A DNA stretch of 64,000 nt from positions 22,134,001 to 22,198,000 of the forward strand of contig NC_086101.1 in NCBI RefSeq assembly GCF_963921235.1, given 5' to 3'. The notes beneath the pieces were generated by a model. The model made no database searches, was not told the DNA's origin, and saw only the letters and a program-made list of their open reading frames with translations. Position numbers and translations under genes: made by a program. This DNA is from Mobula hypostoma. Lineage: Eukaryota. Each line of letters opens with the position of its first letter. Within the stretch, counting starts at the first letter, position 1. This document shows positions 7,081 through 43,839 of this stretch, one piece after another.

Positions 7081-7085
7081 TTCCC

Positions 7086-8539: not shown

Positions 8540-9270
8540 GTTACCCCGGTTTTACGCAATGCCTGTCCCCACCCCATTTAGATGGGGCGTTGGCTGGTCG
8601 AGCAGAGTTTTCAAGGATCGCTGAAGTTTAGAAGACGGCAAATGAATTATTTGTTCGCGTTTTGTTTTTGTTCGCTGTTAAGGCTGGGCAGCGCTGGAGG
8701 TAAGAAATAATGTTCAGGGAATGGGAAGCGCGCTTCACGGTGATTCTCGGTGCCGCCGCAGGAGCGCTGAGGCCGAGGTGGCTCGGCATCCAGAACGGCT
8801 CGTACCTTATGGGCCCTGGAAGCTGCTGCCATCACGTTTGAGAACTTCGAGAGAAAGCCTGGTTTCTAATTCTGCGTCCACGCGTCGCCGTTTATAGTGT
8901 TGCTGTGACGCGCACCTCTCCCAAACTTCGCGTCGCGGCAACGCAAACGTAACAACTGTGATTGGTCCGCAAGTCACCCTACGCTGCAGTAGCTTCCCAG
9001 TGGGCGACTGAAGGACTGGGGAGGAATTCTGGCTGCAAAGCTTTCCATAAAGCTTTACAGACCTCCGAAATTATGGAGGACACATTTCGCACGAAAAAAG
9101 ACGCTCTCGTCTTGTTCACCCCGAGACTACCATGACCATGAAGCATTGCGCGGGCAGGTGAGTGCGCATGCGTGATATGCGCGAATTGCCGAGCGACGCA
9201 GACTCACTAACGCACAAGTATAAATACTCACTACGCGTAAGCCACTTGCGTAGTTTACGGCGTTCAGTTA
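8540..9270. promoter_or_regulatory. CpG island / probable promoter region
   Basis: Sharp CpG enrichment in non-repetitive sequence; ATTGG (reverse CCAAT) at 8961-8965; NRF1-like TGCGCATGCG at 9163-9172; contains the signal-peptide exon. Confidence 0.7.
8642..8699 (+). CDS. Exon 1 (signal peptide) of IgV-5TM receptor gene: MNYLFAFCFCSLLRLGSAG
   Basis: Hydrophobic 19-aa leader ending GSAG; strong donor GAG|GTAAGA in phase 1, matching the phase-1 IgV exons; an in-frame upstream ATG at 8582 is also possible. Confidence 0.75.
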
Positions 9271-17351: not shown

Positions 17352-17551
17352 CCTCTGATGCTGCTTGACCTGTTGAACACGTCCAATATTTTCTGTTTTA
17401 ATTTTAGACCTGTGTCTAGTGCAAATGCCCCTTATTGAGAGGAGTTCTTATGTCTACTTCATTTATCACCTTGCCTTGACCCCTGCCCACATTTCACCCT
17501 TTTCAAGGATGCAACTTAATTGATTTTTTTTTTTCCTTCCTTAATGCCCAG

Positions 17552-17854
17552 CTAAAACGATGCAAGTTCAGGGTGCCCTTGGTTCGAATGTTTTGTTGGA
17601 GTCTGGAAACAGTGCTGATCTCCACGGTCGTGAAGTTGTGTGGGAGTTCACCAGCAGCAATGGAACCGAGTTCACCATTTTGGATGTTGGACCAAACCAC
17701 CCAGAAGTGAAACCAAACAAACATTTTAAAGATTTGATTTTTAATCTGTCCACTGGAGATTTATTATTAAGCAATTTAAAGACAAGTGACCAGGGAAATT
17801 ATACTGTCAGCATTGATGGTCAGGAGCGGAGAAAAATAGAATTGCGAATCTTTG
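17552..17854 (+). CDS. IgV-like exon copy 1 (cysteine-free V-set domain)
   Basis: Polypyrimidine + cccag acceptor; TTTG|GTGAGT donor; phase 1-1; 303 bp open; C-strand W (VVWEF), LLLSNLKTSDQGNY motif, no B/F cysteines. Confidence 0.9.
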
Positions 17855-18203
17855 GTGAGTAGCTTGTGTCACTGAGCATTTATAGTACGGTTGGATGCTG
17901 TTCAGCTTGGACAAGTTCTCATGAACAAACACAAATTGCTGCAGGAATTCTGCACATCAGACAGCATCTATGGAGAGGAATGATACTGATGAAGGGTCTC
18001 AGCTTGAAACGTTGACTGTTCATTCCTGTCCTTAACTGCAGCCTGACCCGCTGAGTTCAGGTATGTGAGTGTTACTCTGGATTTCCATAAGATATAGGAG
18101 CAGAAATAGGCCATTCAGCCCATTGAGTCTGCTCTCCCATTTCACCATGACTGACCCATTTTCCTCTCGACTCCACTCTCCTGCTTCTCCCATAACCTAC
18201 ATG

Positions 18204-20838
18204 GGAAAGAGGTGGGGGTGTGGCACTGTTGATTAGATTGGCTGCAGAAAAGGTGGACGCCATGGAGGGATTGTCTACGGAGTCTCTGTGGGTGGAGGTT
18301 AGGAACAAGAAAGGGTCAATAACTTTACTGGGTGTTTTTTATAGACCACCCAATATTAACAGGGATATAGAGGAGCAGGTAGGGAAACAGATCTTGGAAA
18401 GGTGTAATAATAACAGAGTTGTCGTGATGGGAGATTTTCATTTCCCAAATATCGATTGGCATCTCCCTAGAGCAAGGAGTTTAGATGGGGTGGAGCTTGT
18501 TAGGTGTGTTCAGGAAGGTTTCTTGATGCAATATGTAGATAGGCCTACAAGAGGAGAGGCTGTACTTGATTTGGTATTGGGAAATGAACCTGGTCAGGTG
18601 TCAGATCTCTCAGTGGGAGAGCATTTTGGAGATAGTGATCATAATTCTATCCCTTTTACAGTAGCATTGGAGAGAGATAGGAACAGACATGTTAGAAAAT
18701 TGTTTAATTGGAGTAAGGGGAATTTTGAGGCTACCAGGCAGGAAATTGGAGGCTTAAATTGGAAACAGACGTTCTCAGGGAAAAGTATGGAAGAAATGTG
18801 GCAAATATTCAGGGGATATTTGTGTGGAGTTCTGCATAGGTACGTTCCAATGAGACAGGGAAGTTATGGTAGGGTACGAGAACTGTGGTGTACAAAGGCT
18901 GTAATAAATCTAGTCAAGAAGAAAAGAAAAGCTTACAAAACGTTCAGAGAGCTAGGTAATGTTAGAGATCTAGAAGATTATGAGGCTAATAGGTAGGAGC
19001 TTAAGAAAGAAATTAGGAGAGCCAGAAGGGGCCATGAGAAGGCCTTGGCGGGCAGGATTAAAGAAAATCCCAAGGTATTCTACAAGTATGTGAAGAGCAA
19101 GAGGATAAGACGTGAAAGAATAGGACCTATCAAGTGTGACAGTGGGAAAGTGTGTATGGAACTGGAGGAAATAGCAGAGGTACTTAATGAATACTTTACT
19201 TCAGTATTCACTGTGGAAAAGGATCTTGGTGATTGTAGTGCTGACTTGCAGCAGACTGAAAAGCTTGAGCATGTAGATATTAAGAAAGAGGATGTGCTGG
19301 AGCTTTTGGAAAGCATCAAGTTGGATAAGTCGCCGGGACCGGATGAGATGTACCCCAGGCTGCTCTGGGAGGTGAGGGAGGAAATTGCTGAGCCTCTGGT
19401 GATGATATTTGCTTCATCAATGGGGATGGGAGAGGTTCCGGAGGATTGGACGGTTTTGGATGTTGTTCCTTTATTCAAGAAAGGGAGTAGAGATAGCCCA
19501 GGAAATTATAGACCAGTGAGTCTTACCTCAGTGGTTGGTAAGTTGATGGAGAAGATCCTGAGAGGCAGGATTTATGAACATTTGGAGAGGTATAATATGA
19601 TTAGGAGTAGTCAGCATGGTTTTGTCAAGGGCAGGTCGTGCCTTGCGAGCCTGATTGAATTTTTTGAGGACGTGACTGAACACATTGATGGAGGAAGAGC
19701 AGTAGATGTAGTGTATATGGATTTCAGCAAGGCATTTGATAAGGTAGCCTACGCCAGGCTTATTGAGAAAGTAAGGAGGCATGGGATCCAAGGGGACATT
19801 GCTTTGTGGATCCAGAACTGGCTTGCCCACAGAAGGCAAAGAGTGGTTGTGGGCGGGTCATATTCTGCATGGAGGTTGGTCACCAGTGGAGTGCCTCAGG
19901 GATCTGTTCTGGATGACCTGGATGAGGAAGTGGAGGGATGGGTTAGTAAGTTTGCTGATGACACAAAGGTTGGAGATGTTGTAGATAGTGTGGAGGGCTG
20001 TCAGAGGTTACAGTGGGACATTGATAGGATGCAAAACTGGGCTAAGAAGTGGCAGATGGAGTTCAACCCAGATAAATGTGAAGTGGTTCATTTTGGTTGG
20101 TCAAATATGATGGCAGAATATAAAATGGTAAGACTCTTGGCAGTGTGGAGGATCAGAGGGATCTTGGGGTCCGAGTCCATAGGACGCTCAAAGCAGCTGT
20201 GCAGGGTGACTCTGTGGTTAAGAAGACATACGGTGTATTGGCCTTCATCAATCGTGGAATTGAATTTAGGAGCCAAGAGGTAATGTTGCAGCTATATAGG
20301 ACCCTGGTCAGACCCCACTTGGAGTACTGAGCTCAGTTCCAGTCGCCTCACTATAGGAAGGATGTGGAAGCCATAGCAAGGGTGCAGAGGAGATTTACAA
20401 GGATGTTCCCTGGATTGGGGAGCATTCCTTATGAGAATAGGTTGAGTGAAATCGGACTTTTCTCCTTGGAGCGACGGAGGATGAGAGGTGACCTGATAGA
20501 GGAGTATAAGATGATGAGAGGCATTGATCGTGTGCATAGTCAGAGGCTTTTTCCCATGGCTGAAATGGTTGCCACAAGAGGGCATAGGTTTAAGGTACTG
20601 GGAAGTAAGTACAGAGGAGATGTCAGAGGTAAGTTTTTTACTCAGAGAGTGGTGAGTGCATGGAATGGGCTGCCAGCAATGTTGGTGGAGGCGGATATGA
20701 TAGGGTCTTTTAAGAGACTTTTAGATAGTTACATGGAGCTTAGTAAAATAGAGGGCTAGTAATTTCTAAGGTAAGGGCATGTTCAGTACAACTCTGTGGG
20801 CCGAAGGGCCTGCATTGTGCTGTAGGTTTTCCATGTTT
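18204..20838 (+). mobile_element. CR1 LINE ORF2 (APE tail + RT), 5'-truncated
   Basis: GVFYRPPN, MGDF, GDSDHN, DKSPGPD, QHGFVKG, DFSKAFDKV, GVPQGSVL, KFADDTK; splits host sequence ctacatg|ctaatcaagaac that is intact in copies 2 and 3. Confidence 0.92.
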
Positions 20839-20855
20839 CTAATCAAGAACCTATC

Positions 20856-22611
20856 TTCTCCATTTTGTAAATGTCCATTGTAATTTCCATCCATATATTT
20901 AAAGTTGGGCTCTCCTGAGATAACCATTTTCTGGTAAGGGTCTTTTTACCAGCCACCAGCAGTACATTCATTAAATATTTATATCTCTTTTCAACCATTC
21001 TTGAGGTATATACCAAAATATATGGTCTTACTCTCATTTATCTGTTAGTATATCATTGAAATTTGCAGAATATAGCTTAATCAATCTACTCCCTGAACAA
21101 ATAAGAACCAAGAAAAGTGAATTTTCAAAAAAGGGTAACAAAGGTGTGGTTCCAAGGCTGGGGTCTCTAGATGACCCTGGGTTGGGCTAGAAGAAAAGTC
21201 TAGCCGTGGGGGATAGCCCCACCTACATGTGGGTTGAGGGCCCCTACTGCAGTACCTATAAAAGTAAGTTTAAAAAAAACGATGTCCATTACACAGAAAT
21301 GATTTCCTGTGTATTCCTCCCATGTATATATTCTCATTTAGGCGGGGAAAAAGGAATGAATAAATGAATTTTAAAAATTGAGTAATATAAAATCCACGTT
21401 ATAACACTATTTCTCGAGATGGGTATCTCACCGTCTATTTTTGCTTCTGTTTAGTTTATCAGCACTTTTAAAATTAGCCAAACCTTATGGCTCTTCTGGA
21501 GGAGGTGAGGGCTGCCCTCGGAGAACTGACAGTCTTCTCCTAAAATCCTTCTCTTGTCCTGTTCCTGTCCCCTGCTTTCTAGGTTCTCTTACTATTTCCC
21601 AAGCAGTTCGGGATAACTGCTCAGCCAGACTTTCCCTTGGTTTGACCACGCTAATAGACAGTCCTCTGTTATTCATGTCTGTAGTTGCCTCCTCCACCAT
21701 CTGGTACAGTTGCATCCCTTCTTGGTAAAATACCCCCAGTTTAGCAGGGTATGGGATTTGGAATTTAATCTTTTCTTGCTTTAATATTCGTTTTGCTTCG
21801 GAATATTCTTTCCGTTTCTGTAGGACCGCCAGGGGGGTAATCATGATCGAAGTATGTTAACTTCCCCTTCCAAAATACCCTCTTCTTACCCCAGGCCCTT
21901 CGTAGAATCTCCGCCTTGCTCTTGAATCGAAGGAATCTAAGTACCATGGAGCGCGGTTTACTTTGTCTCCGGGAGGCCGCTGGATGAGTGAATTTCAATC
22001 TCTGTAGTCTGAGGAATCTCCAGCGCTTCCCACAGCAGCTTGTCTACAAAGTCCGTCTTCGACAATCCCTGCGCTCCTTCGGGAACATTATAAATCCTGA
22101 TATTTTTCCGTCACGGTCTTCCCTCCTGGTCAAGCAATTTACTTTCCTGTTGATTTAATATTTTTATTGTCTTACTTTTAGTATCTGCTCCACATTTTGC
22201 ATGCGATCTTCCATCTTCTCAATTTGAGTCTCTGCCACCGCTATTTTCTCATTGACGTTGGCGAGCTCTGACTGGATATCATTGAGTTGTTGTTTTATAT
22301 CTTTTTGGACTTCCCTTATCTCTTCCAGAATCCTTATCATATTTGCCGCTTGGACTGCACTAGGCCCAGCGTCAGCATCGCCGCCACGGGCACGTGTAGG
22401 AGAGCCGCACGCTGTACCTCTCTCTTCCATAGGCTCCGCAGTGGTGCTTTTTTTATCTCCATTCTTTCTCCCCATTCTTGCCCCCCCCCTTATCAATTCA
22501 GATATTTTCGAAAGATCTTATATTTGATGGATTAACGGGCCAAAATATGCGTTTTTCCAGAGACGCTGTTGATTTAAGCTGCCATTCTGAGCAATGATGT
22601 CACTGGAACTC
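20856..22611 (-). mobile_element. L1-clade LINE: ORF1 remnant plus short ORF2 C-terminal piece
   Basis: Coiled coil (22164-22496), GRSRRKNIRI linker, PRSMVLRFLRFKSK, KRKEYSEAKRILKQEKIKFQIPYPAKL; ORF2 tail AGKKTLTRKWLSQESPTLNIW. Confidence 0.8.
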
Positions 22612-23807
22612 CAGTATTAGCCTGCACTTTTATACCTTCTTCCAAAGTGTGTGCCCAAACACTTCCCGACACAGTATTCAATCTGCCACCTCTTTGCCCA
22701 TTCTTCTAATCTAAGGCCTCCTGCAGCCTCTCTGCTTCCTCAACACTACCTACCCCTCCATCCATCTTCATATCATCCACAAACTTGGTCATAAAATGAT
22801 CAATTTCATCATCCAAATCGTTGACATGCAATGTAGAAGAATCGGTCCCAACACAGACCCCTGTGGAATACCACTAGTCACCAGCATCCAATCCAAAAAA
22901 AGGCTCCCTTTATTCCCACACATAGCCTCCTGCCACTCAGCCAATGCTAGAACCTTTCCTGTGATACCCTGGGCTCTTAACTTGTTTAGCAGCTTTACGT
23001 GTGACATCTTGTCAAAGGCCTTCTGAAAATTCAAGTACACAACATCCACCAATTCTCTTCATCTATCCTACTTATTATTCAAAGAATTCCAACATATTTG
23101 TCATGCCAGATTTTCCCTTAAGGAGGCCATGCTGACTTTAGCCTATTTTGTCGTGTGCCTTCAAATTCCCTGAAACTACATCCCCAACAATCGAATTCAA
23201 CACTTTCCCAGCCACTCAGGTCAGGGAAACTGGCCTATAATTTCCTTTCTTCTGCCTCCCTCCCTGTTTGAAGAGTGGAGTGACTTTTCAATTTTCCTTC
23301 CTCCAAATCCATGCCAGAATCGATTTCTTGAAAGTTCATTACTAATGCCTCCATAATCTCTTCAGCTACCTCTTTTTGAACCCTGGGGTATTGTTTGGCA
23401 GGACCAGGTGACTTTAGACATTTCTGTTTCCCAAACACCATCTCCCTTGTAATAGCAACTGCACTCACTTCTGTCCCTTGATACTCTTGAACTTCTGGCA
23501 TACTGGTGTCTTCCCCAGTGAAGACTGATAGAAAATACTTGCTCGGTTCGACCACCTTTCCCTTGTCCCGCATTATTTTCCAATGGTCCAATCCTACTAT
23601 TGCCTCCTTTTATATATCTGAAAATATATTGGTATTTTAGGCTAGCTTAGCTACATATTTCATCGTTCCCCCCCCCCACAGCAAAACTGTTTTTTTCAGT
23701 TGCCTTCTGTTTAGTTATATATATCACCTTGCCTTGAACCCTGCCCACATTTCACCCTTTTCAAGGATGCAACATAACTGATTTTTTTTTCCTTCCTTAA
23801 TGCCCAG

Positions 23808-24113
23808 CAGAGATGAAGCAAGTTGAGGGTGCCCTTGGTTCAAATGTTTCGTTGGAGTCTGGAAGCAGTGCCAATCTCCATGGTCGTGAAGTTGTGTGGA
23901 AGTTCACTAGCAACAATGGAACTGAGTTCACCATTTTGGATGTTGGACCAAACCACCCAGAAGTGAAACCAAACAAATATTTTGAAGATCGTTTGATTTT
24001 TAATCTGTCCACTGGAGATTTATTATTAAGCAATTTAAAGACAAGTGACCAGGGAAATTATACTATCAGCGTTAATGGTCGAAAGCTGAGGAAAATAGAT
24101 TTGCGAATCTTTG
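23808..24113 (+). CDS. IgV-like exon copy 2
   Basis: NAGNAG acceptor cccag|cag; GTGAGT donor; phase 1-1; open frame MKQVEGALG...KIDLRIF. Confidence 0.9.
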
Positions 24114-26303
24114 GTGAGTAGCTTGTGTCACTGAGCATTTATATTAGGATTGGATGCTGTTCAGCTTGGACAAGTTCTCATGAACAGACACAAATTGCTG
24201 CAGGAATTCTGCACATCAGACAGCATCTATGGAGAGGAATGATACTGATGAAGGGTCTCAGATTGAAACGTCGCCTGTTCATTCCTCTCCATAAATGCAG
24301 CCTGACCTGCTGAGTTCCTCCAGCACCAGTGTATGTGAGTGTTACTCTGGATTTCCATAAGACATAGGAGCAGAAATAGGCCATTCAGCCCATTGAGTCT
24401 GCTCTCCCATTTCACCATGACTGACCCATTTCCCTCTCGACTCCATTCTTCTGATTCTCCCATAACCTACATGCTCCAACTAATCAAGAACCTATCAACC
24501 TACGCCTTAATTACATCCAGTGACCTGGCCTGCACAGCTGCCAGTGTCAAGAAATTCCACAGATTCACCTCCCTCTGGGAAAAGAGCTTCCCCCTCTCTC
24601 TGTTCTAAATGGATGTCCTTCTATCTTGAGGCTGTGTCTTCTGGTCATAGGTTCCCCCACCAAAGTAAACAGCCTCTTCACATCTGCACTATCTCGGCCT
24701 TTCAGTATTCAATGAGATTCCCCCACCACCCCCAGTCCTTCTCAATTCCAGCGAGTACAGGCCCTGAGCCTTCAATCGCTACTCTTTCCCTCCTGGAATC
24801 ATTCTCGTGAACCTACTCCAATCCCTGTCCAGTATCAGCATGTTCTTTCTTGGATAAGGTGCCCAAAACTGCTCACACCACTCTGAGGCCTCACCCTTGC
24901 CTTATACAGGCCTCAGCATTACATCTTTGTGTTTATATTGTAGTCCTCTTGAAATGAATGCTAACATTTCATTTGCCTTCCTCACAACTGATTCAACCTG
25001 CATATTAACCTTTTGGGAATCCTACATGAGGATTTCCAAATCCCATTGCACCTCAGATTTTTGAATCTTCTTCCCATTTAGAAAGTAGTCTACACTTTTA
25101 TTCCTTCTACCAAAGTGTGTGCCCATACACATCCCGACACAGTATTCAATCTGCCGCCTCTTTGCCCATTCTTCTAATCTGTCTAACTCCTCCTGCAGCC
25201 TCCCTGCTTCCTCAACACTACCTACCCCTCCATCTATCTTCATATCATCAGCAAACTTGGTCGCAAAAATGGTCAATTCCATTATCCGAATTGTTGACAT
25301 ACAATGTAGAAGAATCGGTCCCAACACAGACCCCTATGGAACACCACTAGTCACCAGCAGCCAATCCAAAAAAAGTTTCCCTTTATTCCCACACTTAGCC
25401 TCCTGCCACTCAGCCAATGCTAGAACCTTTCCTGTGATACCCTGGGCGCTTATCTTGTTAAGCAGCTTTATGTGTGACATCTTGTCAAAGGCCTTCTGAA
25501 AATCCAAGTACACAACATCCACCAATTCTCTTCGTCTATCCTACTTATTATTCAAAGAATTCCAACATATTTGTCATGCCAGCTTTTCTCTTAAGGAAGC
25601 TATGGTGACTTTAGCCTATTTTGTCAAGTGCCTCCAAGTTCCCCGAAATTACATCCTCGACAATCGAATCCAACACTTTCCCAGCCACTCAGGTCAGGCT
25701 AACTGGCCTATAATTTCCTTCCTGCTGCCTGCCTCCCTCCCTGTTTGAAGGGTGGAGTGACTTTTCAATTTTCCTGTCCTCCAAATCCATGCCAGAATCG
25801 ATTTCTTGAAAGTTCATTACTAACGCCTCCATAATCTCTTCAGCTACCTCTTTTCGAACCCTGGGGTGTTGTCTGGCAGGACCAAATGACTTTAGACCTT
25901 TCTGTTTCCCAAACACCATCTCCCTTGTAATAGCAACTGCACTCACTTTTACCCCTTGATACTCTTGAACTTCTGGCATACTGGTGTCTTCCCCAGTGAA
26001 GACTGATAGAAAATACTCACTCGGTTCGTCCACCTTTCCCTTGTCCCGCATTACTATCTCTCCAGCGTCATTTTCCAATGGTCCAATCCTACTATTGCCT
26101 CCTTTTATATATCTGAAAATATATTGGTATTTTAGGCCAGCTTAGCTACATATTTCATCTTCCCCCGCCCCCCCCAGCAAAACTTTTTTTTAGTTGCCTT
26201 CTGTTTAGTTATGTATATCACCTTGCCTTGAACCCTGCCCACATTTCACCCTTTTCAAGGATGCAACATAACTGATTTTTTTTCCTTCCTTAATGCCCAA
26301 CAG

Positions 26304-26606
26304 AGATGAAGCGAGTTCAGGGTGTACTTGGTGAAAATGTTTTGTTGGAGTCTGGAAACAGTGCTGATCTCCACGGTCATGAAGTTGTGTGGAAGTTCAC
26401 TAGCAACAATGGAACCGAGTTCACCATTTTGGATGTTGGACCAAACCACCCAGAAGAGAAACCAAACAAATATTTTAAAGATCGTTTAAATTTTAATCTG
26501 TCCACTGGAGATTTATTATTAAGCAATTTAAAGACAAGTGACCAGGGAAATTATACTATCAGCGTTAATGGTCTGAAGCTGAGAAAAATAGATTTGCGAA
26601 TCTTTG
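26304..26606 (+). CDS. IgV-like exon copy 3
   Basis: cccaacag acceptor; GTGAGT donor; phase 1-1; open frame MKRVQGVLG...KIDLRIF. Confidence 0.9.
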
Positions 26607-26849
26607 GTGAGTAGCTTGTGTCACTGAGCGTTTATATTAGGATTGGATGCTGTTCAGCTTGGACAAGTTCTCATGAACAGACACAAATTGCTGCAGGAAT
26701 TCTGCACATCAGACAGCATCTATGGAGAGGAATGATACTGATGAAGGGTCTCAGGTTGAAATGTCGCCTGTTCATTCCTCTCTATAAATGCAGCCTGACC
26801 TGCTGAGTTCCTCCAGCACCAGTGTATGTGAGTGTTACTCTGGATTTCC

Positions 26850-29490
26850 ATAAGACATAGGAGCAGAAATAGGCCATTCAGCCTGTTGAGTCTGCTCTCC
26901 CATTTCCCTCTCGACTCCATTCTTCTGCTTCTCCCATAACCTACATGCTCCAACTAATCAAGAACCTATCAACCTACTCCTTAAATGCATCCAGTGACCT
27001 GGGCTGCACAGCTGCCAGTGGCAAGAAATTCCACAGATTCACCTCCCTCTGGGAAAAGAGCTTCCCCCTCTCTCTGTTCTAAATGGATGTCCTTCTTGAG
27101 GCTGTTTCTTCTGGTCATAGGTTCCCCCACCAAAGTAAACAGCCTCTTCACATCTGCACTATCTCGGCCTTTCAGTATTCAATGAGATTCCCCCACCACC
27201 CCCAGTCCTTCTCAATTCCAGCGAGTACAGGCCCTGAGCCTTCAATCGCCACTCTTTCCCTCCTGGAATCATTCTCGTGAACCTACTCCAATCCCTGTCC
27301 AGTATCAGCATGTTCTTTCTTGGATAAGGTGCCCAAAACTGCTCACACCACTCTGAGGCCTCACCCTTGCCTTATACAGGCCTCAGCATTACATCTTTGT
27401 GTTTATATTGTAGTCCTCTTGAAATGAATGCTAACATTTCATTTGCCTTCCTCACAACTGATTCAACCTGCATATTAACCTTTTGGGAATCTTACATGAG
27501 GATTCCCAAATCCCATTGCACCTCAGATTTTTGAATCTTCTTCCCATTTAGAAAGTAGTCTACACTTTTATTCCTTCTACCAAAGTGTGTGCCCATACAC
27601 ATCCCGACACAGTATTCAATCTGCCGCCTCTTTGCCCATTCTTCTAATCTGTCTAACTCCTCCTGCAGCCTCCCTGCTTCCTCAACACTACCTACCCCTC
27701 CATCTATCTTCATATCATCAGCAAACTTGGTCGCAAAGATGATCAATTCCATTATCCGAATTGTTGACATACAATGTAGAAGAATCGGTCCCAACACAGA
27801 CCCCTATGGAACACCACTAGTCACCAGCAGCCAATCCAAAAAAAGTTTCCCTTTATTCCCACACTTAGCCTCCTGCCACTCAGCCAATGCTAGAACCTTT
27901 CCTGTGATACCCTGGGCGCTTATCTTGTTTAGCAGCTTTACGTGTGACATCTTGTCAAAGGCCTTCTGAAAATCCAAGTACACAACATCCACCAATTCTC
28001 TTCGTCTATCCTACTTATTATTCAAAGAATTCCAACAGATTTGTCATGCCAGTTTTTCCCTTAAGGAAGCTATGGTGACTTTAGCCTATTTTGTCAAGTG
28101 CCTCCAAGTTCCCCGAAATTACATCCCCGACAATCGAATCTAACACTTTCCCAGCCACTCAGGTCAGGCGAACTGGCCTATATTTTCCTTTATTCTGTCT
28201 TCCTCCCTTCTTGAAGAGTAGAGCGACATTTGTAATTTCCAGTCCTCCAAATCCGTGCCAGAATCTATTGTTTCTTGAAAGGTCATTAATTGTGCCTCTA
28301 TAATCACCAGCTACCTCTTTTCGAACCCTGGGGTATTATCTGGGAGGTCTGGGTGACTTTAGTCTTTTCTGTTTCCCAAACACCATCTCCCTTGTAATAG
28401 CAACTGCACTCACTTTTGCCCCTTGACACTCTTGAACTTCCGGCATTGTCTTCCACAGTGTAGACTGATACAAAATGCTCACTCGGTTCATCGACCATTT
28501 CCTTGTCCTACATTACTATCTCTCCAGTGTCATTTTCCAGTGGTCTAATATCTACTCTTGCCTCTCTTTATATATCTGAAAATATATCGGTATTTTTAGC
28601 TAGCTTACCAACATATTTCATCTTCCCCCTCCCAATGTTCTTTTAAGTTGCCTTCTGTTTAAATATCTCTCAATTCTCGAACTTTCCCTCTAATTTTTGC
28701 TCTACTAGATGCTATTTCTGTTGCTTTAATGTTGGCTTTGACTTCACTTGTCAGCCACAGTTGCATCTTTCTACCTTAAGAACACTTCCTCTTCTTTGGG
28801 ATGTATCTATCCTGTGTCTTCCGAATTGCTCCTGGAAACTCCAGCCTTTGCTGCTCTGCCATCATCCCTGCTAGTGTTCCCTTCCAAAGAACTTTGCCCA
28901 GCTCCTCTCTCATGCCTCTATAATTCTCTTCACTCCACTATAATACTGATATATCATATTTGAGCTTCTCCCTCCTAAATTGCAGGATGAATTCTATCAT
29001 ATTATGATCTGTTTCCTAAGGGTTCTTTTACGTTCAGCTCCCTAATCATATCCAGTACATTACACAACACCTAATCCAGAATTGCTGATCCCCCAGAGGC
29101 TTAACCACAAGCTGCTCCAAAAACCCATCTTGGAGGCATTCCACAAATTCCCTCTCTTGGGATCCAGAGTCAACTTGATTTTCCCAATCTATCTGCATAT
29201 TGAAATCTCTTGTGACAAAAGTAACATTACCTTTTTGACATGCTTTTTCTATCTCCTACTGTAATTTGTACACCTTGTTTTGGCTATAGTTCGAAATCCC
29301 GTAAGTAACTCCCATCAGGGTCTTCTTACCCTTGCAGTTTCTTCACTCTACCTACAAAGATTCTACATCTTCTGGTCGTATGTCACCTCCTTCTAAAGAT
29401 GTGATTTAATTTCTTACCAGCAGAGCCACTCCTCCTCCTCTGCCTACATGCCTGTCCTTTCAAGAGACTGTGTATCTTTAGGTATTAAGC
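26850..29490 (-). mobile_element. Old decayed CR1 (the duplicated unit ends inside it; continues into the APE region after copy 3)
   Basis: KFADD, DFQKAFDK and GDF-like motifs in broken minus ORFs; partial copies at 22613-23715 and 24355-26210. Confidence 0.8.
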
Positions 29491-35061: not shown

Positions 35062-38000
35062 AATAATGAGAATAAGGGATAGGCCATTTAGAACGGAGTT
35101 GAGGAAAAGCTTTTTCACCCAGAGAGTTGTGGATCTGTGGAATGCTCTGCCTCAGAAGGCAGTGGAGGCCAATTCTCTGGATGCTTTCAAGAAAGAGCTG
35201 GATAGAGCTCCTAATGACAGTGAAGTCTGGCGTTGTTGTGCAGGAGAGAAGGAGGGTGAAGAGAAATGCGGTAGTCGTGGGGGATTCCATAGTCAGGGGA
35301 ACGGACAGGAGATTCTGTGAGCCTGACAGAGGTACCCGCATGGTGTGTTGCCTCCCAGGTGCCAGGGTACGGGATGTCTCGGATCGGGTCCTGAATATTC
35401 TAAAGGGGGAGGATGAGCAGCCAGTTGTCTTGGTACATGTTGGTACCAATGACATAGATAGGACAAAGGAGGAGGTCCTGAAGAGAGATTTCCAGGAGTG
35501 AGGAAGGAAGCTGAGAAGCAGGACCTCCAGGGTAGTAATCGCGGGATTCCTACCTGTGCCACGTGCTAGCGAGGGCAAGAGGAGTCGGATCAGGCAGATG
35601 AATGCCTGGCTGAGAGACTGGTGCAGGGGGCAGGGCTTCAGATTCTTGGATAATTGGGATCTCTTCTGGGGGAAGTATGACCTGTTCAAAAAGGACAGGT
35701 TACACCTGAACCCGAAGGGGACCAATATCCTGGCGGGAAAGTTTAATAGAGCTGTTAGGGAGGGTTTAAACTAATTTGGCAGGGGGACGGGAACCGGAAT
35801 GATAGAGCGGAGGAAGGGGAAAACAGAAATAAATCTAAGATAGTGAGCAGTAAAGATGTCAGGAAAGACAAGCAGGTGATGGGGCAAATGTGTAGCCATT
35901 GGGATGAGTTGCCGTGCAATAAAGTTGCAGTGAAATCAAAGCAAAAAGTATCAAATACTGGTCTTAAGGTGTTGTACTTAAATGCCCGCAGCATAAGGAA
36001 TAAGGTGGATGATCTTGTTGTACAGCTACAGATTGGCAGGTATGATATTGTGGCCATCACTGAGACCTGGCTAAAGGACACATGTCTCTGGGAGCTGAAT
36101 GTCCAAGGATACACGGTGTATTGGAAGAATAGGAAGGTAGGCAGAGGGGGAGGCGTGGCTTTATTGGTAAGAAATGATATTAAATCATTAGAAAGAGGTG
36201 ATATAGGATCGGAAGGTGCAGAATCTTTATGGGTTGAGCTAAGGAATAGCAGGGGTAAAAGGACCCTGATGGCAGTTATTTATAGGCCTCCAAACAGCTG
36301 CAGGGATGTGGACTACAAATTACAACTGGAAATAGAAAAGGCTTGTCAGAAGGGCAGTGTTATGATAATTGTGGGGGATTTTAACATGCGAGTAGATTGG
36401 AAAAATCAGGTCGGCACTGGATCTCGAGAGAGAATTTGTAGAATGTCTGCGAGATGGCTTTTTAGAACAGCTTGTTGTTGAGCCCACTAGGGGATTGGCT
36501 GTACTGGATTGGGTATTGTGTAATGAACCGGAGGTGATTGGAGAGATTGAGGTGAAGGAACCCTTCCCCTTAGGAGGCAGTGATCATAACATGATTGAGT
36601 TCACTGTGAAATTAGAAAAAGAGAAGCCGAAATCTGATGTGTCGGTGTTTCAGTGGAGTAAAGGAAACTACAGTGGCATGAGAGAGGAACTGGCCAAAGT
36701 TGACTGGAAAGAGAGCACTGGTGGGAAAGACGGCAGAGCAGCAGTGGCTGGAGTTTATGCGAGAAATGAGGAATGTGCAAGACAGCTATATTCCAAAAAA
36801 GAAGAAATTTTCGAGTGGAAAAAGGATGCAACCGTGGTTGACATGAGAAGTCAAAGCCAAAGTTAAAGCTAAGGAGAGGGCATACAAGGAAGCAAAAATT
36901 AGTGGGAAGACAGAGGATTGGGAAGTCTTTAAAACCTTACAAAAGGAAACCAAGAAAGTCATTAAGAGAGAAAAGATTAACTATGAAAGGAAACTAGCAA
37001 ATAATATCAAAGAGGATACTAAAAGCTTTTTCAAGTATATAAAGAGTAAAAGGCAGGTGAGAGTAGATATAGGACCGATAGAAAATGATACGGGAGAAAT
37101 TGTAATGGGAGATGAGGAGATGGCAGAGGAACTGAACAAGTATTTTGCATCAGTCTTCACTGAGGAAGACAGCAGGATACCGGACACTCAAGGGTGGCAG
37201 GGAAGAGAAGTGTGCGCAGTCAAAATTACGACAGAGAAAGTACTCAGGAAGCTGAATAGGCTGAAGGTCGATAAGTCTCCTGGACCAGATGGAATGCACC
37301 CTCGTGTTCTGAAGGAAGTAGCTGTGGAGATTGCGGAGGCATTAGCGATGATCTTTCAAAAGTCGATAGATTCTGGCATGGTTCCGGAAGACTGGAAGAT
37401 TGCAAATGTCACTCCGCTATTTAAGAAGGGGGCAAGGAAGCAAAAAGGAAATTATAGACCTGTTAGCTTGACGTCGGTGGTTGGGAAGTTGTTGGAGTCG
37501 ATTGTCAAGGATGAGATTACAGAGTACCTGGAGGCATATGACAAGATAGGCAGAACTCAGCATGGATTCCTTAAAGGAAAATCCTGCCTGACAAACCTAT
37601 TACAATTTTTTGAGGAAATTACCAGTAGGCTAGACAAGGGTGATGCAGTGGATGTTGTATATTTGGATTTTCAGAAGGCCTTTGACAAGGTGCCACACAT
37701 GAGGCTGCTTAACAAGATGAGAGCCCATGGAATTACAGGAAAGTTACATACATGGATAGAGCGTTGGCTGATTGGCAGGAAACAGAAAGTGGGAATATAG
37801 GGATCCTATTCTGGTTGGCTGCCAGTTACCAGTGGTGTTCCACAGGGATCAGTGTTGGGGCCGCTTCTTTTTACATTGTACATCAACGATTTGGATTATG
37901 GAATAGATGGCTTTGTGGCTAAGTTTGCTGATGATGCGAAGATAGGTGGAGGGGCCGGTAGTGCTGAGGAAACGGAGAGTCTGCAGAGAGACTTGGATAG

Positions 38001-38985
38001 ATTGGAAGAATGGGCAGAGAAGTGGCAAATGAAGTACAATGTTGGAAAGTGTATGGTTATGCACTTTGGCAGAAAAAATAAACGGGCAGACTATTATTTA
38101 AATGGGGAAAGAATTCAAAGTTCTGAGATGCAACGGGACTTGGGAGTCCTCGTACAGGATTCCCTTAAAGTTAACCTCTAGGTTGAGTCGGTAGTGAAGA
38201 AGGCAAATGCAATGTTGGCATTCATTTCTAGAGGAATAGAGTATAGGAGCAGGGATGTGATGTTGAGGCTCTATAAGGCACTGGTGAGACCTCACTTGGA
38301 GTACTGTGGGCAGTTTTGGTCTCCTTATTTAAGAAAGGATGTGCCGACGTTGGAGAGGGTACAGAGAAGATTCACTAGAATGATTCCGGGAATGAGAGGG
38401 TTAACATATGAGGAACGTTTGTCCGCTCTTGGACTGTATTCCTTGGAGTTTAGAAGAATGAGGGGAGACCTCATAGAAACATTTCGAATGTTAAAAGGCA
38501 TGGACAGAGTGGATGTGGCAAAGTTGTTTCCCATGATGGGGGAGTCTAGTACGAGAGGGCATGACTTCAGGATTGAAGGGCGCCCATTCAGAACAGAAAT
38601 GCGAAAAAAAATTTTTAGTCAGAGGGTGGTGAATCTATGGAATTTGTTGCCACGGGCAGCAGTGGAGGCCAAGCCATTGGGTGTATTTAAGGCAGAGATT
38701 GATAGGTATCTGAGTAGCCAGGGCATCAAAGGTTATGGTGAGAAGGCGGGGAAGTGGGACTAAATAGGATAAAATGGATCAGCTCATGATAAAATGGCGG
38801 AGCAGACTTGATGGGCCGAATGTACTACTTCTGCTCCTTTGTCTTATGGTCTACGCCAAGGGATATGGGGAGACTGCAGGCACGGGGTACTGATTGTGAA
38901 TGATCAGCCATGATCACAGTGAATGGCGGTGCTGGCTCGAAGGGCTGAATGGCCTACTCCTGCACCTATTGTCTATTGTCTGTTG
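35062..38985 (+). mobile_element. Outer CR1 3' fragment split by a longer CR1
   Basis: gacagtgaagtc (35222) rejoins aagggatatgggg (about 38838); the intact junction is seen in the copy at 49790-49830 (minus strand). Confidence 0.7.
35223..38832 (+). mobile_element. Long CR1 LINE with ORF1 SGNH esterase remnant and ORF2 (APE + RT), several frameshifts and stops
   Basis: VVGDSIVR, VHVGTND, DRLHLN; LYLNARSIRNK, ITETW, GDFN, SDHN; DFQKAFDKV, KFADD. Confidence 0.92.
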
Positions 38986-39037
38986 TCTCTGCCTCGCTGT
39001 TCCATGTTTGGTTAACCAGACTTGTGTTTAATTGCAG

Positions 39038-39154
39038 GCCCTTCCGCTGATGACATTCCGATGATTGTTCTGTCGATCTCAGCCCTGGTGTTTTCTTCAG
39101 TTTATCTTATTGCAGTTTTTCCTCTGAACATCTGGAAGTGTAAATCAAACAGAG
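39038..39154 (+). CDS. TM1 exon: GPSADDIPMIVLSISALVFSSVYLIAVFPLNIWKCKSNR
   Basis: gtttaattgcag acceptor; AGAG|GTATTC donor; phase 1-1; about 23-aa hydrophobic run followed by basic residues. Confidence 0.8.
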
Positions 39155-39440
39155 GTATTCCATTTTTGTCCAGTTTACACTTTAACATAAATGTGCAGGC
39201 ATTGCTTGCAAATCTTTACTAATATTAGTAACAACAGGCAGAGAGGCGAATGCTTGCAGGCTTTTTCCACTCAGATTGGTTGTGACTCGGAGGTCACAGG
39301 TTTAGAGTGAAAGATAAAATATTCAAGGGGAAGCTGAAGGGGAGCTTCTTTGCTCTGAGGGTGGTACGAGGGTGAACAAGCTGCCAGCAGAAGTGGTAGA
39401 TGTGAGTCCAATTGCAACCTTTAAGAGAATGTTAATGGGG

Positions 39441-39705
39441 TGGCACGATCGCGTAGTGGTTAGCACAATGCTTTACAGTACAGGTAACCTGGGTTCAGTT
39501 CCCACTGTTGCCTGTAAGAAGTTTGTGTGTTCTCCCTGTGAACACGTGGGTTTCCTCCGGGTGCTCTGGTTTCCTCCCAGATTCCACAGGCATACTGGTT
39601 AGTAGGTTAATTGGTCATTGTAAATTATCCCGTGTTTAAGCTAGGGTTAAATTGTGGGTTGCTGGGCGAGGCGGTTTGAAGGGCTGGAAGGTCGGTGCTG
39701 TATCA
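39441..39705 (+). mobile_element. tRNA-derived SINE (HE1-like)
   Basis: A-box-like gcgtagtggttagc, B-box-like ggttcagttcc, core gtgggtttcctccgggtgctctggtttcctccc. Confidence 0.7.
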
Positions 39706-41464
39706 CATTCTCGCGATCGATCCGATACAGTTCATCATTCTCCAACCCTCCGCCCCCCCCCCACCCTATAGACGGGAACCACAGAGTAAAGGAACAAGTG
39801 AGGGGTAAACTCAGAAAGCTAGTGAGTCCTGCTTGGTACCAATCAGCCAGCAGCATTCACACTTACCACATTCTTGCCATCAATCCAGTATGCTTCAAAA
39901 TGGATGGACCAAAGAGCATCACATTACAGAAACAGGCCTGATGGTTCCAAAACGTGACTTAACAACTACTCTATATTACAGTTCCTGTGAACTCTGACAT
40001 GCAACGTCTTTCAGACGCCAAGCACCATCTGGATGATGCTTCTCACCCTCTTACCCCTTGCCCTAAACTTAAGCTGTCCAATGTCTCCCACTATTTACAC
40101 TCCTCCTCATTTGCACATCTTGAATCTGGCTTCCTCCTTGTCCTCCTCCGCTCCAAGGAGAATGAAACACTCCATGCCCTGTTAATGTGGAATGCTGCAA
40201 GTCCGTTTCACTAACTTATTGGCGGACGGTAGAGGAGCTGCGTGGCGTCAGTCGTAGCGAGGACTAGGCCTTAAGCTGCAGTGTCGCTGTTTGCAGCTGC
40301 ACAGGTGAAAGGCGTCAGTTGGTGCGCTCCACTGGGGGCAGTGTGGCGCGGCGTCCAAGCAGGAGTCAGCGCTACCCACGCTTCCCCTCTTCCCCCCTCC
40401 ACCCCGCCCAAGTGTTCAGTCGGGGGTAGACAAGGCGTATTGTGTTCGACTGCAGATTTCTGCAATATTCATGGACTCAGGGTCTTGGAATATACATATT
40501 TTTGTGTGACTGTATTTTATTTGTATCTTATATTTGCTTGCTGCCTTCTATGTGCTTTGTGCTGTGTGTGACTGTTGGTACTGTGTCTTGCACCTTAGCC
40601 ACGATGTAATGCTGTTTTGTTGCACAACACAGCATAGGCCCTTCAGCCTGCAATGTTGTGCCACCCTACCCCATGGTCGATCTAACCCTGTTACTCCGAC
40701 ACATCCCATAACTCTCCGTTTTTCTATCACACATTTGCCTATCTAAGAGTCTCTGGTGTCCCTAATATATCAGCCCCAACCACCACCCCTGGCTGCAGAT
40801 TCTAGGCTCCCACCATAGGTCCTCTGTTGGTTGGGGTTGACCAGGGAAGTTGCATCCCGGCTTTCTACGTGATATGCAAACCAGGGCAGTATGACAGGCT
40901 CCCCTTCTCCACGCTGCTGATGAATCTAAAGGAACTGCAGAGGCCATTACAGTTTGGCACCAGCAGCGCCGCAGAAGTTGCCAGTCAGCATTGAACTCAA
41001 CGTAAGTCTTCCCTATGAGTGGGAGTAGCCGCAAGGCAGCGGAGGCTGGAGATCTGAGTCTTCCTTCTCCCAAATGAGCTGCCAACCACAGCTGCTGAGC
41101 TCCATTTGCCCCAAGGTACCCACCACTGTCTGTGTAAGCAAAACCATTATCTCACCTTACAAGGCTAATATAGAAATATTTCCACATAGCAGGTGTGTAA
41201 AATTAAAGGAGATAAATTTTGAGTGAAGGGTAAGAGGTTTAAAAGTGATTTGAGCAAGAATATTTTTTCAAAGCAAGAAGTCCCTCTGTCTCATTGACTA
41301 TCTTATCTACCTGAGTGACCAATTTCAAAGATCCTGGCCTTCTGCACCAAGCTTTATTCTTTCTGTTCCTTATTAGGTTCAGTATGTACTTTATCACTTC
41401 AGGCATATGTTGACCCATTTGTGTGACTTTTGCAGCTTTGATACTTGTGTCCTTTTCTCCATAG

Positions 41465-41566
41465 AATTACCAAAGTACAAATGGTGGAAGTATGTCCTGT
41501 ATCTATGTAACATCCTGCAACTTCCTGTCATCCTCGCTGCGTTCAGTTGCTCGATTCATTTTAAAG
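41465..41566 (+). CDS. TM2 exon: LPKYKWWKYVLYLCNILQLPVILAAFSCSIHFK
   Basis: ccttttctccatag acceptor; AAAG|GTTTGT donor; phase 1-1; basic loop then hydrophobic helix. Confidence 0.8.
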
Positions 41567-41680
41567 GTTTGTGCACAGATGTTACTCACTTCCATAAGAG
41601 TGACCAACTTCCAAACCTCGGGGGGGGTTTGGAACGGACAAGTACCTTGTTCAGTGCATTTCTGTACAGTGCTTCCTTAG

Positions 41681-41755
41681 GACCACCAGCACCTGCAGCC
41701 CTCGGTCCCACAGCCGAGGGAAGAGAAACTGCTGGAGGTTTCGGCTTCAATAACG
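41681..41755 (+). CDS. Possible optional extracellular-loop exon: PPAPAALGPTAEGRETAGGFGFNN
   Basis: gcttccttag acceptor; weak AACG|GTGAAC donor; phase 1-1, so it can be skipped in frame. Confidence 0.4.
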
Positions 41756-42069
41756 GTGAACAATGCTACACCGCGGCTTGCCAGTAGACTATCAAGGTCA
41801 CATGTTGCTTGTAAATATCGGAATTGTTAGTTTTATTAAGCTGTACCACATGTATTGTAAATATCTGTTTTGCACAGACTGCAGTAGCCTCACAATCTCG
41901 TTGTCTAGCAATAGCAATCAAGTTCTATTCTGTTTTAATGAGCCACTGGCCACACTTAGTGTGGTTGAGCTTAATATCGATAGGTATACTGATAGGCACA
42001 TTGGGGATCTGAACTCCCAGATGGCATTCAATAAAATCCTTATGTTGAAACTCGTTGAGTTGACAGTTT

Positions 42070-42900
42070 GTTGCTATTGACATGGGCAGACAATTGACTC
42101 GGGGTAGAAGTGTAGAGTTATTTGCAGGGGGAGGGGGTTAGCAGGTTTGCAGATGATACAGAGGTTGGTGATTTTGTGGATAGCTTTGAAAAATGGCAAA
42201 GGACATAGATTGTTTGCAGGGGGAAGGGGTTAGCAGGTTTGCAAATGATACAAAGATTGGTGACGTTGCAGTTAGTGTAGAATACTAGAAAAGAACAGAG
42301 ATCACTTGCAGAAATGACAGGTGGCGCTTAATCTGGCCAAACGTGAAGCTTTGCACTTTGGCAGACGACATGTAAAAAGTCAGTGCACTGTTAATGGCAG
42401 GACCCTTAAATGTATTGATGTACAGAGACAACCTGTGGTCCAAGTCTGTAGGTGAAAGTGGCCTCAAGTTGATAGGATGTTAAAGAACGCATATAACATG
42501 CTTATTATCTTTATCAGTTGTGGAACTGATTTCAAGAATTGGGAAGTCATGTTGCGACTTTATTAAACTGTAGCTAGGTTACGTGTGGAGTACTGCATTT
42601 AATTCTAGTTGTCCCATTGCAAAAAAAGAATGCAGAAGCTTTGGAGAGGGTGCAGAAGAGGTTCACCAGGATGCTGCCTCAAATAGAGGGCACATGCCAT
42701 GAGGGGAGTGTGGACAAAAATGTGTTGTTTTCTCTGGAGAGGTTGAGGTTGAGGCTGAGGGGAGACCTGAGAGTTTATAAGGTTATGAGAGGCACGGGTA
42801 CGTATCTGGTATCTTTTTCTTCGGGTTGTAATGTATAATACCAGAGGGCGTGCATCTAAGGTGAGAAATGAGGCATGATCACACCAAGGAACTCTGAGAC
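42070..42900 (+). mobile_element. Heavily decayed CR1 3' region
   Basis: ALERVQKRFTRMLP...LFSLERLRLRLRGDL. Confidence 0.65.
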
Positions 42901-42994
42901 TGCCTACCCATGGGAACAGCGGAGGTTGCATTAGGGTGCTCGCTATCACCCTGTTGGGGGTAAACAGGTGAGCCACAAATGAGCACACGCAACG

Positions 42995-43210
42995 CACTCA
43001 AAATTCTGGAAGTTCGGCAGCATCTGTGGAGGGGAGGGGAATAAAACAGTTGACTTTTCGGTCCAGGACTCTTCATTAGGATTCGTTAGATCTGGATGAA
43101 GAGTCTCGACCTGAAACGTTGACTGTTTATTGTCTTCCTTGGATGCTGCCTGGCTTGCTGAGTTTCTCCAGCATTTTGTGTCTGTTTCTCAAGATTTTCA
43201 GCGACTGCAG
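42995..43210. mobile_element. Inverted pair of Penelope pLTR fragments with degenerate hammerhead motifs
   Basis: Minus motif 43047-43082 followed by plus motif 43092-43125 (gagtctcgacct-GAAAC-GTT-GACTG). Confidence 0.6.
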
Positions 43211-43632
43211 AATCTCTTTTGCTTATGGACAGCAATGAAGCCTTTCTGGTGCTGCTCACGATGGAGCTAGAAGAAATCTGTGGATTGGTCACCGTCTCTC
43301 TGAGGGAAATGGCCACTTCAAGTTTTGGATCGAGACCCTTGATCAGGATTGGAAACAAGAGTGGAGATGCCCATTATAAAAAGATGAGGGGAAAGGGGTG
43401 AAGTAAGAGCTGGCAGGTAATAGGTCAATCCAGGTGAAGCTGGGGGGGTTGGGATGGGGGAGTCATACGAAGATGAGGTAGGGAGAGGAGAGACTGGGCC
43501 TTTCCAGTCTCACCTACATCAGTGGAACTAATATCTAACTACTCTTGGGAAATGGGATTATGCTATCTTGTTGGCTTAATTTCTCAAATTCTGCATAAAT
43601 TGCTAACCCTTACTGTTTGGTGTTTGCTCTAG

Positions 43633-43752
43633 ATTCTTGTTTACTAAATGTGGCTACAGCATGCATTGCAGTTCTATTGTTTACTTTGCCTGTACCATTT
43701 ATCACTCAAGTACCTAAATGCCGGCGAATTCGCAGATTCAGCACCAGTATCG
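43633..43752 (+). CDS. TM3 exon: SCLLNVATACIAVLLFTLPVPFITQVPKCRRIRRFSTSI
   Basis: Branch-like CTAAC at about 43604, tgtttgctctag acceptor, ATCG|GTGAGA donor; phase 1-1; hydrophobic helix then an Arg-rich loop. Confidence 0.8.
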
Positions 43753-43839
43753 GTGAGAAACAGCTCATCAGTTTTATATCAGTTTTACAGTCGTAGTGAT
43801 ATCCAACTCTCTTATCATCATGTCCTCTGTCTCTGACAG

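Follow-up and report, generated by a model that had tools for sequence, protein, structure and literature searches.

Three V exons lie in the analysed window (the whole stretch of 64,000 nt from Mobula hypostoma), and they are the V1, V2 and V3 exons of a single gene, LOC134346677, whose product consists of a signal peptide, three cysteine-less V-set domains and five membrane helices. All features described here are on the plus strand. The leader exon, which encodes the signal peptide, was placed at 8582-8707 by tblastn (P0165 residues 1-41 and P0006 residues 1-42). V exon copy 1 (V1 domain; 17552-17854), copy 2 (V2 domain; 23811-24113) and copy 3 (V3 domain; 26304-26606) are all open, of phase 1-1, and have an identical donor sequence; copy 1 uses an upstream AG acceptor and has a 3-nt in-frame deletion relative to copies 2 and 3. 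The translations of copies 2 and 3 are 100% identical to V2 and V3 of isoform X1 (P0165; residues 141-241 and 242-343, respectively), and the copy 1 translation agrees with V1 of P0165 by-eye. The five-helix membrane region and tail were located at 39031-58613 by tblastn of P0006, P0001 and P0165, hydropathy and AlphaFold helices, with exons at 39031-39162, 41464-41574, about 43632-43934, 52663-52755, 53964-54041, 55037-55084 and 58542-58610, followed by the stop codon. V3 is spliced straight onto the membrane exons. Copy 3 is absent from annotated isoform X3 (P0161, without V3), yet it was found in RNA contigs, with copy-3-type letters at a depth of about 20 in RNA run X11. Use of the three V exons as mutually exclusive cassettes was rejected as the main mode: X1 joins all three serially and X3 only skips V3.

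The Pfam V-set family (PF07686; cut-off 26 bits) matched copy 3 at 29.4 bits, copy 1 at 27.2 bits and copy 2 at a borderline 26.0 bits. The AlphaFold model of the V domain (pLDDT 91) has strands A, B, C, C', D, E, F and G. A Foldseek search with this model gave 500 matches or more, none of them above E = 0.001; each of the 50 listed was an Ig V-type domain, and the matches of lowest rmsd among those listed were 2B4 (TM 0.84 at 2.3 Å) and CD58 (0.78-0.80). The three translated V exons contain zero cysteines and hence lack the B-F disulfide. The core W, the LLLSNLKTSDQGNY core and the three sequons (NGT, NLS and NYT) are the same in all three translated copies, and the F-G loop differs in each (IDGQER, VNGRKL and VNGLKL), both as the sequence-only reading of this DNA had described. 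Five helices are predicted in all orthologues; the AlphaFold model of the membrane region is poor (pLDDT 61), and no sequence relative of that region with a solved structure was found at E ≤ 10. No match to PF04549 or PF08204 (CD47) was found at E ≤ 0.1 in the ray orthologues P0001 and P0006, and no paper on a CD47-like family of cartilaginous fish came up in a literature search. A general one on how exons and introns become homogenised brought up only loosely related work. The gene belongs to an unnamed family of rays, sawfish and sharks with one to three cysteine-less V domains, five membrane helices and species-variable copy number, which appears to be uncharacterised so far; protein divergence between two Mobula species is 11%. 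Sawfish and sevengill-shark relatives do carry a C2-type domain.

The three V exons sit in a 2.5-kb tandem array, in which the exon is combined with a short unique intron and repeat-derived sequence. A remnant of the preceding unit (unit 0; 22618-23703), comprising the repeat-derived part only, is 6.5% diverged from 25086-26184, and copy 1 is probably the separated front half of unit 0. Unit 1 (23704-26215) was identified as a hybrid by three-way site patterns; its low-divergence tract (24114-25690; intron and repeat-derived sequence) differs by 1.6% from 26607-28160 in unit 2 (26216-28661), whose repeat element extends to about 29491, past the duplicated part. Unit-to-unit divergence is blockwise, between 1.6% and 13%, and the breakpoint is clean. 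Unit 1 resembles unit 2 up to about 25690 and unit 0 after that, and at 23213/25686/28156 the outlier in the site patterns changes from A to C. Hybrid unit 1 is the footprint of an unequal crossover, with the nearest relative switching at a single breakpoint. In segment II, units 0 and 1 are 4.6% diverged against 1.6% between units 1 and 2, a pattern that one crossover alone does not fully account for.

Recounting copy 2 against copy 3 gave 20 substitutions in 303 exon nt (6.6%), 12 amino-acid differences and 5 silent-only codons, which bears out the substitution, amino-acid and silent-codon counts made earlier from the sequence. The flanks have 4 differences in the first 241 intron nt 3' of the donor, 2 in the 106 nt 5' of the exon and about 5 between 24690-25390 and 27160-27860. 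The strength of the exon-flank contrast hinges on the choice of flank: compared with the adjoining low-divergence tract (27/1660, 1.6%) the exon excess has a Fisher p of 6e-6, compared with unique non-repeat flanks only (6/347) p = 0.002, and compared with all non-exon sequence of the 2.5-kb repeat unit (88/2139, 4.1%) only p = 0.053, because the upstream 1.08 kb (22618-23703 versus 25086-26184) is itself 6.5% diverged. Exon versus flank divergence was 8.3% versus 8.3% for copies 1 and 2, 8.0% versus 9.6% for copies 1 and 3, and 6.7% versus 2.1% for copies 2 and 3, the sole discordant pair of the three. Since exon and flank divergence against copy 1 are about equal, the V exons are not generally fast; the earlier claim that they diverge faster than their own introns holds for copy 2 versus copy 3 and their near flanks, and not in comparison with copy 1. 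The exon genealogy is star-like, whereas the flanks group copies 2 and 3 as sisters. CpG hypermutability was rejected as the source of the exon excess, CpG transitions making up only 5 of the 20 differences.

The copy 2/copy 3 excess is limited to one patch and is not exon-wide. This divergent patch of copy 3 (26300-26379, corresponding to 23807-23886 in copy 2) contains 13 differences, 12 in the 5' part of the exon and one at intron position -4, and their clustering within 80 nt has a scan-statistic permutation p < 5e-5; the other 227 exon nt hold 8 differences, not significantly above the flanks (p = 0.06). Copy 3 equals copy 1 at 26318, 26343, 26365, 26366 and 26374, five patch sites that form a consecutive run of informative sites and include two silent ones (permutation p = 0.002). 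At 26300, 26313, 26325, 26326, 26333 and 26334 the state is private to copy 3, the resulting amino-acid changes being Q4R and the two-base codon changes A8V and S11E. These six private changes exceed the neutral-drift prediction over 35-80 nt (P between about 2e-5 and 0.04, by window and rate assumed). No local template of at least 12 nt was found for them, and their states are matched by no copy in the window, nor in three related rays; no fourth V exon copy was found within the 64-kb window and no V3-like domain in other annotated proteins of 312-992 aa. The patch is thus a contiguous cluster with a genealogy at odds with its flanks, as a conversion tract would be, and copy 1 as donor needs either a very short tract (11-43 nt) or private changes arising later. 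Exon-restricted gene conversion, which the sequence-only reading had named as an alternative, accordingly stands in part: the clustered patch, the five-site run and the alteration of copy 3 favour it, and the six changes without a donor in the window do not.

For related species, letters were taken from short assembled contigs aligned to one array unit, and the variants come from the sites listed, a further 208 lying beyond the list; one contig, record 29, is probably a V1/V2 chimera. The related ray (probably M. birostris) yielded exactly two V contigs at equal depth, consistent with the M. birostris V1 and V2 proteins, and the longest M. birostris isoform has two V domains; this ray appears to have V1 and V2 only. 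Judged by sequence, copy 2 is the orthologue of the related ray's V2, which equals copy 2 at all 11 patch sites covered by the contig, and this match across the patch points to copy 3 as the altered copy. At 26365 copy 3 has the silent state derived in V1, at 26318 a derived state is common to copies 1 and 3 of M. hypostoma only, and at 26490 one is common to copies 1 and 2 of M. hypostoma only. At two positions copy 3 departs from both copies 1 and 2 and agrees with rays that are more distantly related (26325 T and 26488 A), a hint that the V3 lineage is older. Hypanus has two V domains identical to each other, and in the family comparison V domains within one species are more alike than orthologous V domains between species.

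The reading we favour, with a probability of about 0.55, is that a recent unequal crossover followed by short-tract gene conversion made the exon-intron contrast, a scheme in which we infer how the events were ordered, which way conversion ran and where the private changes came from. V1 and V2 would be old duplicates, ~8% apart, already present before the related ray split off. The third unit would have been added in the M. hypostoma lineage, by an unequal crossover within the repeat-derived part, and the recent ancestor that units 1 and 2 would share through this crossover would explain the 1.6% flank divergence. Short stretches may later have been exchanged among the exons by gene conversion: the 5' 65-80 nt of V3 would have acquired V1 states, V1 and V2 would have come to have a common species-specific state at codon 63, and V3 would have picked up its tight private cluster, possibly from the same repair event. 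Two genealogies within one 2-kb stretch would then give rise to the exon-intron contrast, and not a faster exon rate.

Diversifying (positive) selection on a ligand-contacting surface after duplication, the cause of the exon excess proposed by the sequence-only reading, is very unlikely, although there are 12 amino-acid changes per 101 residues, the private two-base codon changes of copy 3 form a cluster together with Q4R, the CDR-like loops B-C, C'-C'' and F-G hold 5 of the 12 variable residues, the whole protein is fast-evolving (89% identity between two Mobula species) and dN/dS is near 1, not far under it. The dN/dS comparison, set beforehand as a refuting test, gave 0.48 (NG86), 0.60 (LWL85) and 0.65 (ML) for copy 2 versus copy 3 and 0.6-1.5 against copy 1, estimates that rest on three sequences only and none of which is demonstrably above 1; the private copy 3 changes give ~0.54. 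The replacement share between copies 2 and 3 (13/20) lies under the neutral share (binomial test 'greater', p = 0.96). At silent sites, 7 changes were observed where ~1 is expected at the intron rate (P(≥7) = 1e-4), and exon dS is 0.12 versus 0.016 in intron and flank; this seven-fold silent inflation is as strong as that at replacement sites, and selection on amino acids alone therefore cannot account for the exon excess. The near-equality of exon and flank divergence against copy 1 also speaks against such selection. Strands C, C', F and G form the binding face in CD2/SLAM-type domains. On the AlphaFold model, the variable residues map to strands A/A'/B, to the C'-D region and to two connections, the B-C loop and the F-G turn; between copies 2 and 3, no residue changes in strands C, C' or F, and G differs at its first residue alone. 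That the private front cluster of V3 (Q4R, A8V and S11E) and the loop changes (19, 22, 26, 52 and 91) represent adaptive remodelling of a newly added third domain is a further proposal, which we regard as unlikely.

A possible history, to which we assign a low probability, is that the V3 exon lineage is old and the flanks alone were homogenised. The V2/V3 split would then precede the split from the related ray, which would subsequently have lost V3, and crossover or conversion would have wiped flank divergence and spared the exon front, possibly by selection against homogenised exons. This agrees with the star-like exon genealogy (6.7%, 8.0% and 8.3%) beside flanks that pair copies 2 and 3, with an upstream 1.08 kb as diverged as the exon, and with 26325 and 26488, where copy 3 is like the distant rays. 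A parallel is offered by the MHC class I and II loci, where homogenisation affects the introns and the exon for the binding domain keeps its divergence. It fits poorly with copy 3 having, from codon 31 on, the V2-specific derived states (K31 and VNG-KL) of copy 2 and the related ray's V2, with the lack of a third contig beside the two equal-depth V contigs of that ray, and with a silent state at 26365 that is V1-derived and not ancestral, and it requires two conversion tracts to end at both edges of the 80-nt patch. A single conversion, its donor an unseen V exon paralogue at another place in the genome, could have written the entire patch, private states included, and would cover all 13 differences, adjacent double changes too, in one event; given that the searches described above for a fourth copy in the window, a local template, a V3-like domain in other annotated proteins and the private states in three related rays all returned nothing, this is distinctly unlikely. 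It is highly improbable that copies 2 and 3 are alleles of one unit wrongly set in tandem: false duplications do arise in heterozygous regions of long-read assemblies, but here divergence between units falls into blocks with a clean breakpoint, the window is without gaps, RNA contigs have copy-1-, copy-2- and copy-3-type letters at similar depth, and annotated isoform X1 has all three domains in series.

With unequal crossover and short-tract conversion as the preferred reading, the copy 2/copy 3 contrast is nothing out of the ordinary for an array of duplicated exons. An exon more diverged than its introns is often read as a sign of pathogen-driven selection; in the ray case such an inference needs three controls, namely silent sites, an outgroup copy and repeat-unit breakpoints, and with these in place, all that is left of the signal is a recent crossover and a single patch of 80 nt. 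As a lead, the gene itself is modest. If adaptive remodelling of V3 were true, exon duplication, conversion and selection would together constitute a germline route to ectodomain diversity in an unstudied, fast-evolving shark and ray receptor family of V-domain repeats and five membrane helices.

Among known receptors, the ray gene is like the CD2/SLAM family (2B4/CD244, CD58 and CD48) in its V-set fold without the canonical disulfide and in the weak Pfam 2B4 and SLAM matches of its relatives; its own domains score below the 2B4 and SLAM model thresholds. CD2/SLAM proteins have a membrane-proximal C2-set domain, cross the membrane with one helix and end in a signalling tail, whereas the ray gene has up to three V domains in series, no C2-set domain and five helices. 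With CD47 it shares its general layout, in which a V-type domain at the N-terminus leads into five membrane helices and a short tail, and a language-model feature match to the CD47 cluster (score only 0.63) is a lead at most; unlike in CD47, the V domains are cysteine-less and repeated, and the ray orthologues scanned are without a Pfam CD47 match. Compared with diversifying loci, the ray V exons lack the excess of replacement changes found in MHC peptide-binding exons, and their dN/dS is not demonstrably above 1 (three sequences), unlike that of MHC-like and KIR-like loci. The closest likeness is to the concerted evolution of tandem duplicates such as globin and MHC class I/II genes, although the units here are exons of one gene and not whole genes, and about half of the patch is without an identified donor, unlike in known conversion systems. 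As in those systems, neighbouring segments have differing genealogies, one repeat unit is a hybrid, silent and replacement sites are both shifted in a short patch, and states are shared in a checkerboard among paralogues and species.

Nucleotide and protein self-searches of the whole window returned exactly three copies of an open 303-nt exon (copy 1, 17552-17854; copy 2, 23811-24113; copy 3, 26304-26606), each with an AG acceptor, phase 1 at both ends and an identical donor sequence, and each translating to a V-set immunoglobulin domain of ~100 residues with zero cysteines. The window gene is almost certainly Mobula hypostoma LOC134346677, because its isoform X1 (P0165) has V2 and V3 domains 100% identical to the translations of copies 2 and 3, and a V1 that agrees with copy 1 when compared by eye. 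The protein was searched back against the window DNA to map the exons: a leader exon at 8582-8707, the three V exons within a 30-kb interval, and a membrane region (five hydrophobic helices) with a short tail on about seven exons ending at 58610. V1, V2 and V3 are spliced in series in isoform X1, and V3 is skipped in the annotated isoform X3; M. hypostoma RNA contigs carry letters of copy-1, copy-2 and copy-3 type at similar depths. Annotated isoform X2 (P0160) lacks 68 residues including membrane helices 3 and 4 (window about 43632-43934) and, if made, would keep three helices and place its tail on the opposite side of the membrane. The acceptor AG of copy 1 lies five bases upstream of that used by copies 2 and 3 (17547-17556, 23803-23812, 26296-26305); this upstream AG is gone in copy 3 (CCCAG to CCCAA) through one of that copy's private changes.

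The sequence-only reading held that the V exons diverge faster than their introns, and recounting confirmed this for copies 2 and 3, which differ at 20/303 exon positions (12 amino-acid changes, 5 silent-only codons), against 4 differences in the first 241 intron nt past the donor, 2 in the 106 nt preceding the exon and 25/1554 in the tract 24114-25690 (Fisher p = 6e-6 against the low-divergence flanks; p = 0.002 against unique, non-repeat flanks only). The contrast is marginal (p = 0.053) when the exon is set against the whole repeat unit, because the 1.08 kb upstream is already 6.5% diverged. Nucleotide-level divergence comparisons rest on n=3 sequences, among which exon and flank are about equal for copies 1 and 2 (25/300 and 36/436) and for copies 1 and 3 (24/300 and 42/436), copies 2 and 3 (20/300 and 9/436) being the sole discordant pair. 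A faster exon rate would appear in all three pairs, so the excess does not apply to the three exons in general. Diversifying selection, proposed as its cause, did not hold up: silent differences between copies 2 and 3 number 7 against ~1 expected at the intron rate (P = 1e-4), silent sites are inflated as greatly as replacement sites (dS 0.12, dN 0.057), and dN/dS is 0.48 (NG86), 0.60 (LWL85) or 0.65 (ML). Selection for diversity is thus neither shown nor needed to explain the exon/intron contrast.

Of the differences between copies 2 and 3, thirteen cluster in an 80-nt patch at the 5' end of the copy 3 exon (26300-26379; permutation p < 5e-5); the 8 in the other 227 exon nt are no significant excess over the flanks (p = 0.06). 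Within this patch copy 3 equals copy 1 at five consecutive informative sites (26318, 26343, 26365, 26366 and 26374; run test p = 0.002); its state at 26365 is silent and derived in V1, and the derived state at 26318 is common only to copies 1 and 3 of M. hypostoma. Exon-restricted gene conversion, also proposed earlier, would account for this run. Six states are private to copy 3 (26300, 26313, 26325-26, 26333-34), none of which occurs, among the sites listed, in contigs of three related rays (organisms B, C and D). These six changes are more than neutral change would give (P ranges from about 2e-5 to 0.04 with the choice of window and rate), their dN/dS is ~0.54, and selection for diversity may conceivably have acted on them. 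Elsewhere, copies 1 and 2 have the same species-specific state in codon 63 (26490), and sharing follows a checkerboard at codons 26 and 59 too.

The V exons lie in a tandem array of period ~2.49 kb. In each unit the exon is preceded by ~105 nt of unique sequence and followed by ~240 nt of unique intron, after which comes sequence from a high-copy interspersed repeat (further window copies at 5259-7111 and 36093-38849; k-mer depth 1e5-1e6 in all four runs). Three-way comparison of the repeat-derived part of unit 0 (remnant 22618-23703), unit 1 (23704-26215) and unit 2 (26216-28661) revealed a switch of nearest relative at about 23213/25686/28156, before which units 1 and 2 are near-identical with unit 0 the outlier, and after which units 0 and 1 are alike with unit 2 the outlier. 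The middle unit is a hybrid, the pattern that unequal crossover between two older units leaves. Copy 1 and the array remnant are separated by 18203-22618, which resembles material inserted later into a single original first unit. A different short interspersed repeat, with no relation to the array, has two copies of 92% identity at 20495-20758 and 62621-62882.

We conclude that the exon/intron contrast is real and comes from two genealogies spliced together, because the recent crossover-derived likeness of units 1 and 2 meets an exon front with another genealogy. A recent unequal crossover would have made the two units similar, an exchange with V1 would have overwritten the front of the copy 3 exon, and a cluster of private changes would also have altered it. 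At two sites copy 3 has the states of the distant rays, which keeps alive another reading: an older V3 lineage whose flanks were homogenised later. Cross-species letters came from contigs of four public runs placed on one array unit (25090-27550), an incomplete set. Organism B, ~2-4.5% diverged in contig pieces in or beside the unique part, has exactly two contigs across the exon front, at equal depth (74.8 and 73.4), and their differences translate to V1 and V2 of M. birostris (P0164); on this agreement B is probably M. birostris, whose longest annotated isoform has two V domains only. Over 148 nt, the V2 contig of B and copy 3 disagree at 11 sites, and at every one of these the contig has the copy 2 letter; sites private to copy 2 number only three in the same stretch, so copy 2 is the ordinary V2 orthologue and copy 3 the changed copy. 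The G of the window at 26321 corresponds to C in contigs of the two rays that are more distant (runs X10 and X13), a change that would make the otherwise conserved glycine 7 arginine and that may be a contig-placement artefact.

On an AlphaFold model of V3 (43-sequence alignment, pLDDT 91), positions differing between copies 2 and 3 lie in strands A/A'/B (4, 6, 8, 11, 14), the B-C loop (19, 22, 26), the C'-to-D region (52, 59, 63) and the F-G turn (91), with no difference in strands C, C' and F and only the first residue of G affected. Their pattern is neither random nor clearly ligand-facing. The top loops and first residues of V3 would abut V2 in a linker-free domain chain. Among the matches listed, the lowest-rmsd solved structures were 2B4/CD244, CD58 and CD48, with JAML, myelin P0 and nectin also ranking high; CD2-family domains bind through strands C, C', F and G, the face that is near-invariant here between copies 2 and 3.

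Close relatives were confined to rays, sawfish and sharks in a full HMMER search of 1.8 billion proteins. The window gene (8582-58610) is a member of this unnamed family, whose proteins have a signal peptide, then 1-3 V-set domains lacking cysteine, and a region of five membrane helices with a short tail; sawfish and sevengill shark members have an extra C2-type domain. Family members carry the NCBI labels 'uncharacterized', 'HEPACAM-like' or 'CEACAM1-like'. M. hypostoma isoform X3 (P0161) and M. birostris P0164 are 89% identical (50/468 residues differ), with changes spread alike through leader, V domains and membrane helices, a high divergence for a species pair with ~3% flanking-DNA difference. 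Both V domains of Hypanus sabinus (P0152) are identical at the protein level, which implies that the exon was duplicated very recently or has been fully homogenised there, and in Hemitrygon, Pristis and Heptranchias a protein's own V domains are closer to each other than to orthologues; these protein comparisons point to concerted evolution of the family in all four genera. The overall plan of the family is similar to that of CD47, but no sequence match to CD47 was found for the ray orthologues scanned.
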